A stretch of DNA of 64,000 bases from Phaeosaccion multiseriatum (Eukaryota > Protista > Ochrophyta, other classes): assembly GCA_965112735.1 (NCBI GenBank), contig OZ218959.1, forward strand, positions 1,860,001 to 1,924,000. The letters are read 5' to 3'. This document shows, one piece after another, positions 41,870 through 64,000 of this stretch (positions within the stretch are counted from its first letter, which is position 1; each line of letters begins with the position of its first letter). The position numbers and the translations under genes were made by a program. The notes beneath the pieces are model-generated. The model was given only the letters and a program-made list of their open reading frames with translations. It made no database searches and was not told where the DNA came from.

Positions 41870-42074
41870 ACGCAGAGAAGGCTGAATCGAACAGCTTGGC
41901 CTCTCGACCACGACGGCTTTGAAGGCCGCCCCGAGAACCATCTCGGATCATCCTTGCCGCAGAAGGAGAGAGGAGGAGAGGAGGGGATATGAAAAGGAGA
42001 AAAGGAGCACGCAGAGAAGGCTGAATCGAACAGCTTGGGGGGCCTCTCAACCACGACGGCTTTGAAGGCCGCCC
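41870..42074. repeat. ~62-bp direct repeat pair upstream of the LHC gene
   Basis: 41870-41931 vs 42009-42074. Confidence 0.75.
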
Positions 42075-53760: not shown

Positions 53761-54313
53761 TGTAAAAGAGGAGGCGACGCGAGTACGGCGTCGAAAGAGT
53801 TGTAGCAAGTGCCGAAGAGCTCAGCGCGGTGAGAAGGACAGCGAAGGGGCGGAGCAGCCCAGCAGTCCACCGCGCGAAGGAGACGGCAGCGACAGCAAAA
53901 GTTTCCGGGGGACGCCGCTATACGAGAAGGGGATCCGGGACTTTCTACGAGGCGTATCTTTTCAGATCAGCCGTATTTTGTGGTCTGGAGAGGAGGCACC
54001 GCAAGTTCAGCGTTGAGAGTCGTCACAAGTATTTCAGTGCTCAGCACGGTAAGGGCAGCATGGGGCAGCCCAGCAGTCACGAGCATGCGGGCGGTGGCTC
54101 GAGTGTCGAAGGCAATTGCCACTCTAGGTGGGGTTTTCACCGCCCACACACGGACCAAGACGACGATGGGGGATAGAGAGTACAGCAGAAGGCAGCGCCG
54201 CATCAGCGGGCTGCGATGCGACGTGCAGTACGACAGATGATGGGAGTGGCGTAGCAGCTCCAAGTACAGCAGCAGAAGGCAGCGCCGCAACAGCGGGCTG
54301 CGATGCGACGTGC
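53761..54313. mobile_element. Probable older repeat/LTR-like segment interrupted by the gag-only element
   Basis: Begins with TGTAA. Contains a ~50-bp direct repeat (54179-54227 and 54262-54313) whose second copy is cut exactly at the LTR. Confidence 0.35.
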
Positions 54314-54526
54314 TGTGGAAAGTCAGTCGTATGTCAGTGGCCCAGGCCTAGGCAACGCAGTGAGAAACGGTGCCCGTTTCTCACTATCCTCCTGTAGGTG
54401 GTCGTTTAGGACAGTGCATAGATAAGCTAATAGATACAAGGCCGGCTGTCAGGCTAGCTTTGGGGTGCTGCTACCTTATCTGTGTGTCTAGTCCGTTTCG
54501 TGGAGGTCTAAGCACGACTTTCCACA
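54314..54526 (+). repeat. 5' LTR of the gag-only element
   Basis: Identical to 62147-62359. Confidence 0.92.
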
Positions 54527-55002
54527 ACCCCAAAGCTCGAAGACAGTTTGGCACTTGGCCAATAGGCTCAGCAGAGGGAGGCTTTGAGTTCATCGTGCGC
54601 TAGACTAGCACGTGGACGTTTTTGGTTAGTGTCCAAGGCACGGACACGCCACAGCTTGCTCCGTCAGGGGCGTTTAGCTTAATTAGCTTTGCTTGGGAAC
54701 CGGTGTTGTGATAAGTATCGCCATTTGTGACTGAGCACTATATCGACGTACAATATCGATGTGGATATCGATATTCATGTATGGCCACGGCCATCACTTC
54801 CTTGAACGCATCTCTCAGTAGGTATTATTAATACACGAGTTGACACTACTCTAGCTTGTCCCTGTCATCGTAGAGGAGATATCGCAACACGACAGCTGTC
54901 GCGACACTTCACAGCTAGCTGGTTCTACGTAGTCGGCGACGGCACACAGGCGAGTTTTGGTCGGATAACTCAAGTGAGAGAGAAGGAGTCCTTTCGTTAG
55001 CC

Positions 55003-55971
55003 ATGCCAGGCGCGGAAGAAGAAGGCGTTGAAAAGGCGGACGCAGCGGCGCCCGTCAGTGCGAGTTCCGCGATAGAAGGAGACGCACAGCAGCAGATGGC
55101 TGAAATGATGGAAAAGATGATAGCGGCAGCGTTGGCCAAACACATCACACAGCAAGGAGTGCCCACGGCAGCGGCCGCAGCACCAGTCACTATCTCCTCA
55201 GTCGGAGGAACAGTGACCCCCAGCGGGGGGGGGAGTACAGCACAGCAGCTGCTAGAACTCACGTTCAAGCCGAAGAACAATGAGTTTGACAAGAAGTTGG
55301 AATCGGAGGGAGTGATGCCTCTCTTGCGATTTATGCGAGCGGTCACGGATCACATAGGGGGGATGGGGGCAAAGGCATTCTTGGTGGATAGTGATAAGAT
55401 CCCCAACGCAGACGACGCCTCCCGGGACTCTAAGTATGCCCTGACGTTCAGTCTGTACCAACAGACGGGCCTCAAGATTTTGGAGGCCATTCCCTCGGAC
55501 ATGAGGGATGCCATAGAAGAACGCACTCGCACAGCGCGGTTCCAAGTGGACCTGGTACTATTGATGCAGGCAATCAAGGAGGCAGTGATGGGGAGCACGC
55601 AGTCACAGCGACAAGAGTTTCTCACCTCCGAGATGCACGATCTGAGGCCAGGGGTGGGGGAGACGGGACTTGCCTACCTCAACAAGTTTCTCCAACTCAA
55701 CGTGTTGATGACGGAGGAGCAGCTTCCTATGTCCTACTCCATCATCAAGGACAAGTTCCTCAGGCGTATGGGGCAGAGATGGGAGTCGTTCGGCCAAGTG
55801 CACGGTCATTCGGTAGAGACAGAGGACGAGTTTAATCGGTTCAAACAGCAAGTGCAGCGGTTTGACAGTGACCTCCAAGCGCAAGCGAGGGAGGCGGGAG
55901 AGGACCTTGAGCGGGGCCTTTTCCACATTTACCAGCAAAGGCAGAAGACACAGCAACCAGCAGGGGGGTAG
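55003..55971 (+). CDS. Copia gag (capsid part)
   Basis: First ORF after the LTR, with an MHR-like LRPGVGETGLAYLNKF motif; ends in TAG. Confidence 0.8.
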   Translation: MPGAEEEGVEKADAAAPVSASSAIEGDAQQQMAEMMEKMIAAALAKHITQQGVPTAAAAAPVTISSVGGTVTPSGGGSTAQQLLELTFKPKNNEFDKKLESEGVMPLLRFMRAVTDHIGGMGAKAFLVDSDKIPNADDASRDSKYALTFSLYQQTGLKILEAIPSDMRDAIEERTRTARFQVDLVLLMQAIKEAVMGSTQSQRQEFLTSEMHDLRPGVGETGLAYLNKFLQLNVLMTEEQLPMSYSIIKDKFLRRMGQRWESFGQVHGHSVETEDEFNRFKQQVQRFDSDLQAQAREAGEDLERGLFHIYQQRQKTQQPAGG

Positions 55972-56530
55972 ACAGACCACCACAGGGGCAGGAGAGAAAG
56001 ATCGGTCCAACACACGCTGTTACAGGTGTGGGAGAAAGGGGCACATGCGGACGACGTGTCCGTCCAAGGAGGAGCTGTGTTTCAACTGCCACAAGCCGGG
56101 GCACCAGCGTGCAGACTGCCCAAACAGCAGGAAGAAGAAAGATGGCGAGCATGTGGAAGGCTCCACCAGCGCCATTTTCAGCATTCCGTGGACGCTACAG
56201 GAGAGGGGGAGCGGCCATTCTCTCTACCATATGTCCAAGCTGAAGTCGGGGGCGGATGGCACACGGCAGGGGCTCGCAGACAGCGGATCGGCGCTCAATG
56301 TGTGGCCCAACTTGGATGGACTGTACGATTTCTGCGCTCATCAGAGTTTAGTGCAACTCGCAGACGGCAAGTCGCACGCGCAGATAATGGGCAAAGGGAA
56401 GGTGAACATCAGCTACGTCTCCAACGACGGCAAAAGAGGACTGAAGGGGCTGGAGGTAGTGGTGTCGCCAGACGTACCTTTCTGCATTTTTGCAGAGAAG
56501 AACCTCTCAGACCTACTGGGGGGAGCGCAA
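55912..56530 (+). CDS. Copia nucleocapsid (2x CCHC) and aspartic protease, in the +1 frame relative to gag
   Basis: CYRCGRKGHMRTTC, CFNCHKPGHQRADC, LADSGSA and VQLADG...GKG. Confidence 0.85.
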
Positions 56531-58152
56531 GGCCAGCGGGGAAGCCAGTCTATTTCGGCCCCTCAGCAGACGCACCAGAGACGGTGCACACGACGCAGGA
56601 CCCAGAGCTGGGGCTTGACATGCTACAATTCAAGATCGAGGAGGCCACGGAGCAGTGGAGTGATTACATGACTTACCACTGCAAGAAGGGCCACCGCAAC
56701 GATCAAGAACTACGGCGACAGGCCAAGCTGGAGGGCGTGACACTGTGCGGGAAGAGGGCGCCGTGCAAGACTTGCGCAGAGGTGAAGATGACGAAGGCAG
56801 CTCAGAGTAAGCAGTTCATCGACTACCCCAAGGCACCGCTGGCACAGGTAACGCTCGACACCATTCCTCTCGAAGGAGAGCACGTGTTGCAGGCGTGCTG
56901 CCCGCACACGGGTATGGGCTGGTGCAGGAAGGTGGGGGGAAAGACGGAGGCGCACTTCCAGAGCGTGTATGACGACCTCAACACCACAGTATTCATTCCA
57001 GGGGAGAGGACAGCGGGGTACAAGGTGCAGTGTCTGTCAGCAGACAACGGATCGGAGCTCATCAAGACGAAGGCAGCGAAGAAGATGCTCTACTCCCAGG
57101 GCATTGAGGTCAAGCTGACGGACCCCAATTGTCAAGCGCAGAACGGACTGAACGAGGCTCGACACAAGGAGCTGGCGCGAATGTCTATTCTTTTCATTGA
57201 GGAGGCGAAGCTGGAGGAGCACTCGAAGCAGCTGAGGTTCGTAGCGTACAAGTTGGCGCAGCTTCTCTACAACACCAGGTGCAGGAGGGGGCAGCAGCAG
57301 TCCCCCTACGAGCTGTATTTCAAGCGCAAGCCTGACCTACAGCACCTACACATCTTCGGAGAGCAGGCGAAGGTGCGGGTGGGCAACAAGAAGCACAAGC
57401 AGTGGCACAACGACAAGACGCACTCGGCAGTGTACGTGGGACAGAGCCCCAACCACAGATCAGCCTGTCTCCTTTTCTACATCCCTTCACAGAAGCGGTT
57501 CATCTCCAGCTCGTCCTACACATTCGTGACGAACCGCAGACACGACGGCACGGTGTTCGGGAGTCACGTGGAGAAGGGGAAGCTACCAGAGACAGCGGAG
57601 AAGGAGGATGACAGCGAGGACGAGGACCAGCCCTCGAGCAGCGGGAGCAGCAGCAGGAGCAGCAGCGGGAGCAGCAGCAGGAGCAGCAGCAGGAGCAGCA
57701 GCGGGAGCAGCAGCAGGAGCAGCAGCAGGAGCAGCAGCAGTAGCGCGAGCGGGGGAGGTGGGGGCGGGACCAAGAGTGGAACCGTCACATGGAACACGAG
57801 ATTAGAGGAGGCACAGCCAGCCCCACAGCAGCAACAGACATCACGCTGGGAACAGGTTCTCACCCGAGAGTTCGTGGAGAAGTTACAACTCGAAGGAGAA
57901 GGCCTGGAGCGACGTCAGCACGCCGAGCGGCAACAGAGGGAGCAGACGGCAAAGCAGCAACAGAGAGAGCAGCAGAAACAGCAAGTAGAACAGGCAGAGC
58001 AGCAGCAGGAAGAGCCAACGCAGCAGGCTGAGCCGCCAGAGAGAGGCAAACTCTGGACATACGAGGTGGCCAAAGATGGCGACAAGGGAGCCAAGGAGCA
58101 CGACTGGGGCCACGATCCCAGCCTGGGCCGCACGCGTAGCGGCAAGCACTGA
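56520..58152 (+). CDS. Copia integrase
   Basis: HCKKGH...CKTC, TLDT, ADNGSE, QNGLNE, SPYELYF and LHIFG; ends in TGA at 58150-58152. Confidence 0.88.
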
Positions 58153-59796
58153 CATGCTGTCTCCTCCATACTAGGCCCACTCTTTCTGATGCCAGGCCTA
58201 AAGGAGAGCGAGGTACCGATACCGCGGTCTCTGGCCCAGGCTCAAGCAGGAGAGTACGCGGAGCAATGGACGGAGGCGTACTGGGCAGAGCTCAACGCGA
58301 TCGAGCAACGCCAGGTATGGGAGGAGGTTGATTATCAAGAGGGGATGAATGTGCTGCATACAGTCATGCTATTCAGAGCAAAGGTGACTGGGGGATTTGT
58401 GGATAGGCTCAAGTGTCGATTTGTCGTGATGGGGAACGAGCAGATCGAGGGGGAGGATTACTTTGATACCTTTGCACCAGTGGTGGGGAGCTCGACGATG
58501 AAGATGTTCTTTGCTATCACGTGCCAGAAGAAGTGGGTATTGGAGTTTGCAGATGTGGAGACGGCTTTCCTGCATGCACCTCTGCATGAGGGGGAGTACG
58601 TGTACATTAGAGCACCAGAGGGCATGAGAAAGTTCGGGAAGGTGCTGAGGCTGTTGAAGAGTCTGTACGGTCTTCATCAGTCTCCCAAGAGGTGGAACGA
58701 GACAGTGGTGGCATTTCTACTCGCAATGGGGTGGGTACAGTGCCCAGTGGATCCGTGTCTGTTCGCCAGGTTCGAGGAGGGGGAGCTAATAGGGCTCATC
58801 ATTCTATATGTAGACGACCTAGGAGGGTCAGGGGAGGGAAATCTCATTGACTGCACTTTCAAGGAGATTGACGAGCGTTTCAAGTTGAAGCGTTTGGGAT
58901 CGAATGTGGGGAAATTTCTGGGAGTTGAAGTTGACTACGCATTCGAGGCGGGACAGCTCAGGCTTTCGCTAGGAGGGTATCTTAGAGCGATGCTTGAGAA
59001 GTTCGACATGACGGAGGTACCTGTGTACGGCTCACCAGCAGAGCAGGGGGTACATTTGTCAGTGGGTATGGAGCCAAGCACCACAGAGGAGGAGGAATTC
59101 ATGCAGGACAAACCATACTGCTCAGCGGTAGGGTCAATCCTATGGGTTGCCAACTGGGTGAGGCTTGATGTATCCTTCGCCATCATGCAGTGTGCTCGTT
59201 TTATGAAGAGGCCGGGGCCTCGACACTGGGCAGCATTGCAGCGCATTTTCGGGTACTTTAGAGGTAGTTTAGACTTGGGAATTGAGTTTGATCGAGAGGC
59301 GGGGCTTCATCTGGAGGCATACGCAGACTCGAGCTGGGCAGATGACGTCGACAGGCGCAGGAGCTCAGGGGGATACGTCGTGACATTCGGCGGGGGAGTG
59401 ATTGCTCACAAGGCAACACTATTTAAGGTCATAGCACAGTGCTCTATGGAGAGTGAGTACATGGCCGCAGCGGAAGCAGTGAAGGAGTTGCTGTTTCACA
59501 GAGGGATTCTGGAGTTTCTGTTTCCAGGAGCCAACATGACGGAGTCGATTGTGCACGAGGACAATCAAGGGTGCATTCAGATGGCAAATGGCAACGCGGG
59601 CACCAAGCGCGTACGTCACATCGACATTCGTTATCATTTCCTGCAGTACCACGTGGACAAGGGACACGTTCGGTTTCAGTACATCAGCACAAAGGACCAG
59701 CTTGGGGACATCATGACCAAGGCATTGGCACCTCAGGTACACAGCGGTCTGGCGGGGCAGATGCTCAAGAAGGGAGACAGGAAAGGGGGGGACTAG
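58153..59796 (+). CDS. Copia reverse transcriptase and RNase H (same frame as the integrase, after the TGA)
   Basis: KCRFVVMG, DVETAFL, SLYGLHQSP, YVDD, YADSSWA, EDNQ, RHIDIRYH and GDIMTK. Confidence 0.95.
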   Translation, partial: HAVSSILGPLFLMPGLKESEVPIPRSLAQAQAGEYAEQWTEAYWAELNAIEQRQVWEEVDYQEGMNVLHTVMLFRAKVTGGFVDRLKCRFVVMGNEQIEGEDYFDTFAPVVGSSTMKMFFAITCQKKWVLEFADVETAFLHAPLHEGEYVYIRAPEGMRKFGKVLRLLKSLYGLHQSPKRWNETVVAFLLAMGWVQCPVDPCLFARFEEGELIGLIILYVDDLGGSGEGNLIDCTFKEIDERFKLKRLGSNVGKFLGVEVDYAFEAGQLRLSLGGYLRAMLEKFDMTEVPVYGSPAEQGVHLSVGMEPSTTEEEEFMQDKPYCSAVGSILWVANWVRLDVSFAIMQCARFMKRPGPRHWAALQRIFGYFRGSLDLGIEFDREAGLHLEAYADSSWADDVDRRRSSGGYVVTFGGGVIAHKATLFKVIAQCSMESEYMAAAEAVKELLFHRGILEFLFPGANMTESIVHEDNQGCIQMANGNAGTKRVRHIDIRYHFLQYHVDKGHVRFQYISTKDQLGDIMTKALAPQVHSGLAGQMLKKGDRKGGD

Positions 59797-60614
59797 TTTT
59801 AGTTCAGTAGTTTTAGTATGAGGTTTTCAGGACTTTGTCTCGGGGGGGTTTTAGGACAAGTCAGGTGTTTCCTCATTGTGTTTGTGGTAGAGTGTCAGCT
59901 ATCAAGAGAGATAGTGATTCAGTCATAGGAGGGTGTTGTGATAAGTATCGCCATTTGTGACTGAGCACTATATCGACGTACAATATCGATGTGGATATCG
60001 ATATTCATGTATGGCCACGGCCATCACTTCCTTGAACGCATCTCTCAGTAGGTATTATTAATACACGAGTTGACACTACTCTAGCTTGTCCCTGTCATCG
60101 TAGAGGAGATATCGCAACAACCGGTGGGAGAATTTATTTGTGGGAGAATTTATTGGTTGGCTTTGAAAGAGTGGCACAGCAGCGCTACCGTGGATCGGCA
60201 GCAAGAGGTAGCTAGGGATATTGCAAGGAGCAGCTGCAGGGGCAGCAGCAGGAGGCACGGAAGGATTGGCGAGCAGCTGCAGGGGCAGCAGCAAAGGATT
60301 GGATACAGCAGCTGCAGGGGCAGCAGCAGGAGGCACGGGTATCCGCTATACTTAATCAGAGGGGACCGCTGATTTAGAGGTTAGCGGCAGGAGATACAGC
60401 AGGCTTGGCTGGAGAGGCAGGGGGCGCAGCAGCAGGTGTTGGATACCGCAGCAGCTGCAGAGGCAGCAGCAGCAGCAGCAGGCACGGATATCAGGCATAA
60501 TTAGGCACGCTCGGAGGGAGCAGCTGCAGGGGCGCAGCAAGAGGGAAGATGCCGGCATAGCGCGGCGATCGGCTGGCACAGAGTAAGCGTACTGGCTGGT
60601 CCCAGGAGGAACCG

Positions 60615-61880
60615 ATGGGGGATCACGACATGGTCAATCGGTTGATGGAGGAGCTGCATGGAATCAGGATGGACCTTGCAGCACTTCCGGTGCTACTGGG
60701 CCAGCTATTGGGTCGGGATCCAAGGCAGCAGTCGGAGGTGCAGGTAGCTGCTGCACAGGTGGGGTCGGGCAGCAAGCAGAAACGATCTAAGGTCGACTGT
60801 GGGGCAGGGCAAGTCTTTTCGTGCTTTCACTGCAAGAAGGAGCACTGTCTCTCTCGCTGCCCTACCGAACCGACCACCGGAGCCATGGTGAGGAAGATGG
60901 TGGATGCAGGGAAGCGGTACGGCTTGGGTACAGCTTCCCAGGTGGTGGTGACGCTTGTGCAGCGCACTGAGCAATACAAGCGCGTCCTTGCTCAGCTGGT
61001 GAAGGCCGTGACGACGACAGGGCAGGCAGCACAGCGCAGAGCCTCGAAGGAGTTGCAGACGCTAGAGCTGACGGTGGCGGCCGCGGCGCAGTCTCGGCTT
61101 CGGGTGGCGCAAGCGCAGGCTCAGGAGGAGCAGGTAGAGCAGGCTGGCGTCACGCTTGCAGAGGGGTCAGTGTCTGCTGCGGTCCTCGAGCGGGAGCGGC
61201 AGGAGCGCGAGTCTGTTTGGCTGGAGGAGGAACAGTTGGAGCGGGCGCGTGTGTGTGCGGCTCAGGAGCGGGTGGAGAGGCGCCGCGTCGGGGAGAAAGA
61301 GAGACGGCAGCAGGCGCAACAAGCTGCCTTGGCTGAGGAAGCTCAGCGCAAGCTGCAAGAGGTACACACGCAGGCTCAAGCGGAGAGCACGCGGGTACAG
61401 CAAGTGCGGGACTGGCAAGAGCGGGAGGACGCACTGCGGGCTGTGGCTCAGCCTGTAGTGCGGGTGAATGGTGTTCTCAGTGGTCTTGGTTCCACTACCG
61501 AAGTTGGTGCGCGGCCAAAGAGGAGGGGGCGGCGGTCGAAGAAGCGCAAGGTAAGGCCCGACGGGGTCAGGGATCCGGCAGAGCGGCAGCTTGAGGAGGA
61601 GCGCCAGTGGCAGCAGGAGATGGACGCGAGGAAGTGTGATCCGGCAAGGCAGCGCCGGTGGCAGCAGGAGATTGCAGCGGATCGTCCGGCCTGGTTGGAC
61701 CGGCCTCCTCTCTCTCTGAAGGATCGGATGCAGCAAGTGGAAGCGGCGCAGGCGCGGCTGCAGAAGCTGATGGACGAGAAGGCGGCCCAGCTGCTGGCGA
61801 CGGAGCAGGCCGCGCATGGAGTGCCTCGTACGGTTGCAACGCTGGGACAGCAGGTGACGGTGGGGACGAGCCAGCGCTAG
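60615..61880 (+). CDS. 421-aa gag-like protein: CX2CX3HX4C knuckle, long coiled coil, basic NLS-like patch
   Basis: CFHCKKEHCLSRC, a Q/E/R/A-rich helix and RPKRRGRRSKKRK; intact ORF between the LTRs. Confidence 0.7.
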   Translation: MGDHDMVNRLMEELHGIRMDLAALPVLLGQLLGRDPRQQSEVQVAAAQVGSGSKQKRSKVDCGAGQVFSCFHCKKEHCLSRCPTEPTTGAMVRKMVDAGKRYGLGTASQVVVTLVQRTEQYKRVLAQLVKAVTTTGQAAQRRASKELQTLELTVAAAAQSRLRVAQAQAQEEQVEQAGVTLAEGSVSAAVLERERQERESVWLEEEQLERARVCAAQERVERRRVGEKERRQQAQQAALAEEAQRKLQEVHTQAQAESTRVQQVRDWQEREDALRAVAQPVVRVNGVLSGLGSTTEVGARPKRRGRRSKKRKVRPDGVRDPAERQLEEERQWQQEMDARKCDPARQRRWQQEIAADRPAWLDRPPLSLKDRMQQVEAAQARLQKLMDEKAAQLLATEQAAHGVPRTVATLGQQVTVGTSQR

Positions 61881-62146
61881 CGCAGCCGTGCGCAGCCACG
61901 GAGGGTGAGTTTGAGGCCTTGGGCTTTCTCACCCTGCCGTGGCAGGTGTGTGGCAGGGTGACCTGTGGAGTGCCACGTCACACACTGGTGGGTGAGTTTT
62001 GCATATTTCTCATCCGGTTTTTTTGGAAGCAGCATAAAGGGGTTTGCTACAGTCGAGCTTCAGTAGGTGAAAACGCTTGAGTTGCGTGGGGACACGCAAC
62101 AGTCTTGTCAGGGGAGTGTTAGAAGTGCAGGGATGGCTGACGGGGA

Positions 62147-62359
62147 TGTGGAAAGTCAGTCGTATGTCAGTGGCCCAGGCCTAGGCAACGCAGTGAGAAA
62201 CGGTGCCCGTTTCTCACTATCCTCCTGTAGGTGGTCGTTTAGGACAGTGCATAGATAAGCTAATAGATACAAGGCCGGCTGTCAGGCTAGCTTTGGGGTG
62301 CTGCTACCTTATCTGTGTGTCTAGTCCGTTTCGTGGAGGTCTAAGCACGACTTTCCACA
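62147..62359 (+). repeat. 3' (central) LTR of the gag-only element
   Basis: Identical to 54314-54526; followed by ACCCCAAA. Confidence 0.92.
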
Positions 62360-62530
62360 ACCCCAAAACCCCTTTATGCTGCTTCCAAAAAAACCGGATG
62401 AGAAATATGCAAAACTCACCCACCAGTGTGTGACGTGGCACTCCACAGGTCACCCTGCCACACACCTGCCACGGCAGGGTGAGAAAGCCCAAGGCCTCAA
62501 ACTCACCCTCCGTGGCTGCGCACGGCTGCG

Positions 62531-63796
62531 CTAGCGCTGGCTCGTCCCCACCGTCACCTGCTGTCCCAGCGTTGCAACCGTACGAGGCACTCCATGCGCG
62601 GCCTGCTCCGTCGCCAGCAGCTGGGCCGCCTTCTCGTCCATCAGCTTCTGCAGCCGCGCCTGCGCCGCTTCCACTTGCTGCATCCGATCCTTCAGAGAGA
62701 GAGGAGGCCGGTCCAACCAGGCCGGACGATCCGCTGCAATCTCCTGCTGCCACCGGCGCTGCCTTGCCGGATCACACTTCCTCGCGTCCATCTCCTGCTG
62801 CCACTGGCGCTCCTCCTCAAGCTGCCGCTCTGCCGGATCCCTGACCCCGTCGGGCCTTACCTTGCGCTTCTTCGACCGCCGCCCCCTCCTCTTTGGCCGC
62901 GCACCAACTTCGGTAGTGGAACCAAGACCACTGAGAACACCATTCACCCGCACTACAGGCTGAGCCACAGCCCGCAGTGCGTCCTCCCGCTCTTGCCAGT
63001 CCCGCACTTGCTGTACCCGCGTGCTCTCCGCTTGAGCCTGCGTGTGTACCTCTTGCAGCTTGCGCTGAGCTTCCTCAGCCAAGGCAGCTTGTTGCGCCTG
63101 CTGCCGTCTCTCTTTCTCCCCGACGCGGCGCCTCTCCACCCGCTCCTGAGCCGCACACACACGCGCCCGCTCCAACTGTTCCTCCTCCAGCCAAACAGAC
63201 TCGCGCTCCTGCCGCTCCCGCTCGAGGACCGCAGCAGACACTGACCCCTCTGCAAGCGTGACGCCAGCCTGCTCTACCTGCTCCTCCTGAGCCTGCGCTT
63301 GCGCCACCCGAAGCCGAGACTGCGCCGCGGCCGCCACCGTCAGCTCTAGCGTCTGCAACTCCTTCGAGGCTCTGCGCTGTGCTGCCTGCCCTGTCGTCGT
63401 CACGGCCTTCACCAGCTGAGCAAGGACGCGCTTGTATTGCTCAGTGCGCTGCACAAGCGTCACCACCACCTGGGAAGCTGTACCCAAGCCGTACCGCTTC
63501 CCTGCATCCACCATCTTCCTCACCATGGCTCCGGTGGTCGGTTCGGTAGGGCAGCGAGAGAGACAGTGCTCCTTCTTGCAGTGAAAGCACGAAAAGACTT
63601 GCCCTGCCCCACAGTCGACCTTAGATCGTTTCTGCTTGCTGCCCGACCCCACCTGTGCAGCAGCTACCTGCACCTCCGACTGCTGCCTTGGATCCCGACC
63701 CAATAGCTGGCCCAGTAGCACCGGAAGTGCTGCAAGGTCCATCCTGATTCCATGCAGCTCCTCCATCAACCGATTGACCATGTCGTGATCCCCCAT
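62531..63796 (-). CDS. Inverted identical copy of the 421-aa gag-like ORF
   Basis: Translation is identical to 60615-61880. Confidence 0.7.
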   Translation of the reverse strand: MGDHDMVNRLMEELHGIRMDLAALPVLLGQLLGRDPRQQSEVQVAAAQVGSGSKQKRSKVDCGAGQVFSCFHCKKEHCLSRCPTEPTTGAMVRKMVDAGKRYGLGTASQVVVTLVQRTEQYKRVLAQLVKAVTTTGQAAQRRASKELQTLELTVAAAAQSRLRVAQAQAQEEQVEQAGVTLAEGSVSAAVLERERQERESVWLEEEQLERARVCAAQERVERRRVGEKERRQQAQQAALAEEAQRKLQEVHTQAQAESTRVQQVRDWQEREDALRAVAQPVVRVNGVLSGLGSTTEVGARPKRRGRRSKKRKVRPDGVRDPAERQLEEERQWQQEMDARKCDPARQRRWQQEIAADRPAWLDRPPLSLKDRMQQVEAAQARLQKLMDEKAAQLLATEQAAHGVPRTVATLGQQVTVGTSQR

Positions 63797-64000
63797 CGGT
63801 TCCTCCTGGGACCAGCCAGTACGCTTACTCTGTGCCAGCCGATCGCCGCGCTATGCCGGCATCTTCCCTCTTGCTGCGCCCCTGCAGCTGCTCCCTCCGA
63901 GCGTGCCTAATTATGCCTGATATCCGTGCCTGCTGCTGCTGCTGCTGCCTCTGCAGCTGCTGCGGTATCCAACACCTGCTGCTGCGCCCCCTGCCTCTCC

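Follow-up and report, generated by a model that had tools for sequence, protein, structure and literature searches.

The genome of the ochrophyte alga Phaeosaccion multiseriatum contains a short non-autonomous long terminal repeat (LTR) retroelement, here called family A, that probably primes reverse transcription with the 5' end of its own RNA, as Tf1 of Schizosaccharomyces pombe does. The stretch analyzed (the window) is 64,000 nt in length and corresponds to C10:1860001-1924000. Coordinates without a contig name refer to the window, and the genome searched comprises 67 Mb in 22 contigs. The interval studied, 54314-62359, was described in an initial annotation as one Gag-only element. It is two elements, a copy of family A and a complete Ty1/copia retrotransposon that was inserted later into the family A leader, and both are on the forward (+) strand. 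Two sister families, B and C, keep a similar complementarity of 10 bp between LTR and the bases that follow it.

Family A is a non-autonomous LTR retroelement that lacks pol and is about 2.6 kb in length when uninterrupted. In the window its 5' LTR (54314-54526) and 3' LTR (62147-62359) are identical direct repeats of 213 bp with the inverted ends TGTGGAAAGT...ACTTTCCACA. The leader is divided by the nested insertion into two parts (54538-54703 and 60125-60614). It is followed by ORF421 (60615-61880), an open reading frame (ORF) for an orphan protein predicted to consist mostly of long helices, and then by a polypurine-rich tract, GGGATGGCTGACGGGGA (62130-62146), whose putative function is suggested by its position adjoining the 3' LTR. 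At least 48 matches to the LTR are found in the genome. Ten uninterrupted copies have lengths of 2577-2698 bp, and all of them lack 54706-60118. In the family A copies at C14:2652654-2655279, C8:1183409-1186013, and C14:2640520-2643126, position 54705 is joined straight to 60119. ORF421 is the sole ORF of the uninterrupted copies, which have no protease, reverse transcriptase, RNase H, or integrase. Direct LTRs, TG...CA ends, and target-site duplications identify family A as an LTR retrotransposon.

Family A is young and has been mobile recently. The LTR pairs of its copies have only 0-2 differences per 213 bases, and clean 4-bp target duplications are found at five uninterrupted copies (CATG, CAAT, ACAA, CCAG, and CACT). 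The empty site of one copy is present in contigs from public sequencing runs (joint 517|G|3130 on L036). Five such runs were used as assembled contigs, one of them a metatranscriptome (a small share) and four of unrecorded kind. The near-identical LTR pairs, the clean duplications, and the empty site together show the youth of the family. The initial annotation had claimed identical LTRs, recent activity, and dependence on Pol from elsewhere, and all of these hold for the outer element. Its further statement that a 421-amino acid ORF is the only one present, with no protease, reverse transcriptase, or integrase, is correct for the outer element, as seen in the uninterrupted copies, but not for the interval, where the nested copia contributes gag and pol. 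The term Gag-only therefore does not describe the interval.

The sequence after the 5' LTR of family A is complementary to a sequence within the LTR. There is no TGG directly after the 5' LTR. Instead, the 11 bases immediately 3' of it, ACCCCAAAGCT (54527-54537), which form the predicted primer binding site (PBS), are the exact reverse complement (11/11) of AGCTTTGGGGT at 54456-54466, in agreement with the first description. It is proposed that the transcript starts with the latter motif of 11 nt, which would act as the self-primer. The motif lies 20-38 nt downstream of an AT-rich, TATA-like patch, ATAGATAAGCTAATAGATA (54418-54436), close to the 20-40 bp given originally. This patch is a putative promoter and is kept in families B and C, and the spacing of the motif from it is suggestive of a transcript start. 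The match between PBS and LTR is not due to chance, because among 200,000 random 11-mers of matched composition only 14 (about 7e-5) find their complement in the LTR. The nested copia provides an internal control, as the bases after its LTR have no complementarity of 7 nt or more to its own LTR. In each of the three families, RNA that starts at the motif is predicted at minimum free energy to fold with its 5' end paired to the PBS.

The breakpoints of rearranged copies are the most informative part of the evidence for self-priming. In six independent rearranged copies a full LTR is followed by part of the PBS (8, 9, 9, 10, 11, and 11 nt), and in none does this part reach 12 nt. They then run on into other element sequence, and no foreign bases are present at the junctions. 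In two copies (L095 and L096) the PBS part is followed by the reverse complement of U3, forming a snap-back, while the junction at 62360 in the window leads to interior sequence from 62045 in reverse complement. The remaining junctions lead to LTR position 73 onward, to the middle of ORF421, and to the sequence immediately upstream of the purine tract. Similar snap-back junctions are seen in families B and C. At the window junction the repeated sequence is ACCCCAAA (62360-62367), which contains the first 6-8 nt of the PBS, and together with the 3' LTR it resembles plus-strand strong-stop DNA. An LTR with a short copy of the PBS is the structure expected of this intermediate, and the position of its 3' end shows to what point the primer could be copied. 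A tRNA primer usually allows about 18 nt to be copied, so the breakpoints would fit a cleaved self-primer of about 11 nt rather than a tRNA, and indirectly they would also fit an RNase H cut after nucleotide 11.

Families B and C retain the pairing between LTR and PBS. The LTRs of family B are about 232 bp in length, begin with TGTTGAAAGT, and end with ...CTCTTTACA. LTR starts lie about 1.25-1.5 kb apart, and at least 70 starts of this type were counted. The family B interior consists of tandem repeats of 113-115 nt and has no ORF. Family C LTRs end with ...CGTTTTACA, and the motif is found 90 nt from the LTR end. The LTRs of both families are about 75% identical to those of family A, with a U5 that is divergent in sequence and in length. 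All three families keep CTTTGGGGT(T) inside the LTR and (A)ACCCCAAAG immediately downstream of it. In family A the pairing involves motif positions 1-11 (AGCTTTGGGGT with ACCCCAAAGCT). In families B and C it involves positions 3-12 and has 10 bp (CTTTGGGGTT with AACCCCAAAG); the first two pairs are lost, and a T-A pair is gained through the last base of the LTR. Thus the edge pairs differ around an invariant core of 9 nt, and it is suggestive that a helix of 10-11 bp is kept by these different edge pairs.

The following account of family A in the window is held with moderate confidence. A non-autonomous element, interrupted in this copy by a copia, would begin reverse transcription in a Tf1-like manner. 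Its RNA would start at or near 54456, and the first 11 nt would fold back on the PBS and enclose 60 nt of R-U5; here the pairing is seen in the sequence, and the fold is predicted. RNase H from a helper would cut after nucleotide 11, and the resulting 3' end would prime minus-strand DNA. Plus-strand strong-stop DNA would then end as the LTR plus 11 nt, and this is the form found fused to other sequence in the six rearranged copies, one of which has its junction at 62360. Pol, and probably Gag too, would be supplied by a helper whose integrase makes 4-bp duplications. The tRNA-independent, Tf1-like priming put forward in the initial annotation thus has indirect support from the sister families, the tRNA checks, and the breakpoints, and it is not proven.

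Several points weigh against this account. The transcript start at or near 54456 is a prediction, as assembled run contigs cannot show RNA ends. Covariation between PBS and LTR had been suggested as a check, and the outcome is mixed: the pairing of 10-11 bp is kept in each family, but there is no clean double change and thus no true compensatory change, and the 9-nt core is identical in three families that are related by descent. No helper with a self-priming type of reverse transcriptase was found when the RVT_1 and RVT_2 matches of the genome were compared with PBS and LTR-start sites. No relatives from other organisms were found either, as a pattern made from the conserved LTR block gave 57 matches in metagenomes, none of them related by BLAST. 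The remaining points concern the primer. The PBS is common to at least 55 LTRs outside family A, as a shared host primer would also predict. The tRNA search with RF00005 scored only the organellar contigs C17-C22, leaving an incomplete list of nuclear tRNAs, and the pattern tests described below would miss any tRNA that contains an intron or has an unusual T-loop.

A host RNA primer is the strongest alternative to self-priming, and it is judged unlikely. The primer would be a tRNA fragment or a small RNA ending in ...CUUUGGGGU, and pairing of the LTR motif would serve as a regulatory or packaging stem or as a mask of the PBS. The wide occurrence of (A)ACCCCAAAG after the LTRs and the incomplete list of nuclear tRNAs would favor it, and the LTR context TAGC-TTTGGGGT-GCTG can, in our own reading, be drawn as a small hairpin that resembles a tRNA arm. 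The distribution of the PBS 11-mer argues against such a primer. It occurs 94 times in the genome, and no tRNA is found within 100 nt on either side of the 32 occurrences outside family A, one of which is a further diverged LTR. The core combined with a GTTCRA T-loop at an anticodon-like or D-arm-like distance has 3 and 1 genomic occurrences, compared to 5 and 7 for control patterns, and is therefore at or below control frequency. The comparison of the PBS with tRNAs, which had also been proposed, thus gave no host match within the tRNAs and patterns covered. In addition, the PBS part of the rearranged copies is 8-11 nt in length, with no extra bases that could come from a longer primer, and a stem that masks the PBS would leave unexplained why 10-11 bp are kept by different edge pairs. 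These checks support tRNA independence of family A indirectly.

It is improbable that the complementarity has no role in priming at all. According to this explanation, a conserved promoter or initiator block would match the PBS by accident, or the pairing would be the remnant of an old hairpin rearrangement. The motif is indeed part of a block of some 45 conserved nucleotides (CAAGGCYGGCTG..AGGCTRGCTTTGGGGTKGCT), which is possibly maintained for transcription alone, and the three families are not independent samples. However, an accident conflicts with the low chance of an 11-nt match given above, and it would not account for pairing that is kept per family despite differing edge bases. The snap-back copies also show that both sequences annealed and were extended.

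The nested element (54704-60119) is a Ty1/copia retrotransposon. Its LTRs (54704-54889 and 59934-60119) are 186 bp in length, identical, and of the form TGTTG...CAACA, and they are flanked by the 5-bp target duplication ACCGG at 54699-54703 and 60120-60124. The ORFs encode a gag-like protein (55003-55971), a protein with two CCHC knuckles and the D-S-G motif of a protease (55862-56671), an integrase with a match to Pfam SH3_retrovirus (56026-58152), and a copia-type reverse transcriptase/RNase H (58189-59796; Pfam RVT_2, E 2.7e-42). The RVT_2-type reverse transcriptase, the order gag-protease-integrase-reverse transcriptase, and the 5-bp duplication place it in Ty1/copia. Because the second LTR pair has its own duplication and the uninterrupted family A copies lack the segment, the interval comprises two elements, and the 8-kb "element" should be treated as two in annotation. 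A single autonomous element, with gag-pol, ORF421 as an extra gene, and an internal duplication of 188 nt, would explain why gag, protease, integrase, and reverse transcriptase are all inside the outer LTRs, but its likelihood is close to nil and it is refuted: the "internal repeat" is an identical 186-bp TG...CA LTR pair flanked by ACCGG, exactly this segment is absent from every other copy of the outer element, the same copia occurs alone at about nine other loci, and the outer element duplicates 4 bp, not 5 bp.

The reading frame shifts twice in the coding region of the nested copia, near 55900-55970 and near 56600-56670, and an in-frame stop (58150-58152) separates integrase from reverse transcriptase. 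Of the nine further genomic copies listed, eight have the same open reverse transcriptase frame of 547 codons, and the frame breaks may therefore be a feature of this copia family rather than damage. Copia elements have entered the leaders of both a family A copy (window position 54704) and a family C copy (C14:2590741-2594935). This could reflect a target preference or chance.

No helper for family A was found. All RVT_1 and RVT_2 matches were crossed with all ACAACCCCAAAG sites and with all TGTKGAAAGTCAGT LTR starts, and the autonomous partner with the same LTR ends that had been anticipated was not among them. A reverse transcriptase is beside or between such LTRs at only a few places, all of which fit nested or adjacent insertions. 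The two clearest candidates, on C14 near 2.33 and 2.59 Mb, belong to one class of copia, a third copy of which has no such LTR. They are nested insertions, since at 2.59 Mb an insert of 4.2 kb divides a family C leader in two. A candidate on C3 near 0.10 Mb fits neighboring insertions. The difference between the 4-bp duplications of family A and the 5-bp duplications of the copia shows that the nested copia is not the helper. Another element with a reverse transcriptase, at L099:6391-8883 (-), is abundant and has a weak RVT_1 match. It is often arranged in tandem at a spacing of about 4.1 kb, with arrays on C1 and C8, and no integrase match was found in the ORFs examined. It could be an element of DIRS, Penelope, or LINE type.

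ORF421 has the properties of a coding sequence, but its description as a Gag-like zinc-knuckle protein is not supported. Its length exceeds that of every ORF obtained in 1000 composition-matched simulations, and its GC pattern is coding-like (GC1 0.75, GC2 0.46, GC3 0.72). A six-frame search of the genome gave about 13 full-length open copies with 95-100% amino acid identity, which form two subfamilies, and no more distant paralogue. The subfamilies have 19 non-synonymous and no synonymous differences, but 17 of the 19 are in 61622-61840 around a 57-nt deletion, so these counts are uninformative on selection. There is a single C-X2-C-X3-H-X4-C motif near residue 70, with a spacing that is not that of a standard zinc knuckle, and no match to Pfam GAG, capsid, or zf-CCHC families. 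No homologues were found among 5.8 billion clustered proteins by a word search or among 1.84 billion representatives by phmmer, and ESM Atlas features and a contig look-up with the exact protein were empty. The structure prediction that had been proposed gives no support to a Gag-like fold: the AlphaFold model, which is of low confidence, has long helices only (residues 107-178 and 188-288), and the predicted local distance difference test score (pLDDT) of the N-terminus is below 50. The label Gag should not be used for this protein. As a guess, it may act as a nucleic acid-binding coiled-coil scaffold.

Family A combines features of several known types of LTR retrotransposon. To our knowledge, self-priming has been demonstrated experimentally only in Tf1, and predictions exist for a few lineages of fungi, vertebrates, and plants. 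The original work on Tf1 is reportedly that of Levin and colleagues. The target duplication of Tf1 is 5 bp. For the Tf1/sushi group and for the moss Tcn1 clade, self-priming is inferred (PMC6317226, PMC5006619), and a further source deals with the same subject (PMC6934838). Like Tf1 and Tf2, the Tf1/sushi group, and Tcn1, family A has no tRNA-type PBS, and a stretch of about 11 nt in its LTR, 3' of the putative promoter, can pair with the bases that directly follow the LTR. Those elements are autonomous Ty3/gypsy chromoviruses whose own reverse transcriptase/RNase H makes the cut, whereas family A lacks pol, would depend on a helper, makes 4-bp duplications, and has a predicted transcript start and cleavage. 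Membership in the Tf1/sushi clade is not applicable to an element that encodes neither reverse transcriptase nor integrase, and the proposal of a Tf1-like mechanism is unaffected by this.

Self-priming outside the Tf1/sushi group has been predicted before from sequence. The plant Ty1/copia lineage TAR, with Houba and Osr-1, was predicted to self-prime in this way, as were 12% of the plant elements surveyed (PMC6317226). Family A is like TAR in this respect, but TAR elements are autonomous copia elements of land plants, and the nested copia of the window has no self-complementarity. The TR-GAG elements of plants are non-autonomous LTR elements of less than 4 kb that contain one ORF together with typical LTRs, PBS, and polypurine tract (PMC4350172). 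Family A resembles them in being short and non-autonomous with a single ORF, and it differs in that ORF421 is not a recognizable GAG. TRIM and LARD elements are also mobilized in trans. Family B is TRIM-like, while family A has a long ORF, unlike TRIMs. Classical TRIMs have a PBS of the tRNA-Met type. A family B example is found at C8:1600316-1604050 (L099:16-3748), and copies of this family sometimes form chains of the type LTR-interior-LTR-interior-LTR. Known or predicted self-priming in fungi, vertebrates, and plants is thus already on record, as are single-ORF non-autonomous LTR elements. In the literature searched, no paper was found that combines self-priming with retrotransposons of stramenopiles, diatoms, or brown algae, and only four papers treat self-priming alongside non-autonomous LTR elements.

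The family A copy in the window is part of an inverted dimer. The repeat of the PBS start after the 3' LTR is followed by an inverted second copy of family A (62366-64000, -), and both features were missed in the initial annotation. Within the window this stretch is an inverted copy of 60411-62045, and it runs past the window end. The second copy lacks the last 101 nt and the 3' LTR, and its 5' LTR is at C10:1924464-1924676. From 54310 on to C10:1924680 there is a unit of 10,363 bp that consists of the family A copy, its 3' LTR, ACCCCA(AA), and the inverted second copy. GTGC is found on both sides, as a left target duplication at 54310-54313 (+) and as a right copy outside the window at C10:1924677-1924680. 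The sequences on the two sides adjoin each other within a single host repeat unit of 87 nt (compare 54183-54260), and the whole inverted dimer therefore seems to have been integrated as a single molecule. Alternatively, it may be a fold-back made during assembly.

Head-to-head pairs of family A are also found elsewhere. At C12:1587018-1592280 (L032:519-5781) neither copy has a duplication of its own, and the pair is flanked by CCAC. Since only the pair as a whole has a duplication, it represents a second dimer integrated as a unit. A pair of similar appearance at C8:870936-876233 consists of two separate insertions with the duplications CACT and CCAG.

A broader interpretation of the three families is tentative and, taken as a whole, doubtful. 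Families A, B, and C would be a set of self-priming non-autonomous elements in a stramenopile alga, the Gag of family A would have been replaced by its own orphan coiled-coil protein, and the genome would keep strong-stop "fossils" (an LTR with 8-11 nt) and inverted dimers inserted by integrase. If this is true, the fossils and dimers would be evidence at the sequence level for primer length and for fold-back errors in reverse transcription. A young, multi-copy family without pol would extend the range of self-priming to a distant lineage of algae, and the self-priming signal would be shown to work in trans, for a reverse transcriptase that the element does not encode. Breakpoints at 8-11 nt into the PBS would also be a cheap readout of primer length that requires only sequence, and other families could be tried.

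Some further observations concern the surroundings of the element and its presence in public data. No Rfam match is found within 54000-64000. ARAGORN predicts a tRNA-SeC-like gene with anticodon TCA at 41871-41957 (-) of the window, and the PBS complement is not present in it. A cluster of the 11-mer at C14:300-322 kb was considered as an LTR element and is a duplicated host gene. The public runs X2-X5, with 26-97 million letters each, hold 90-93% of the sampled words of the family A element. In X2, X3, and X5, whose run type is unrecorded, the k-mer depth over the element (L036:300-3400) far exceeds the expectation for genomic DNA in such small runs, which would fit a strongly expressed element in RNA libraries.

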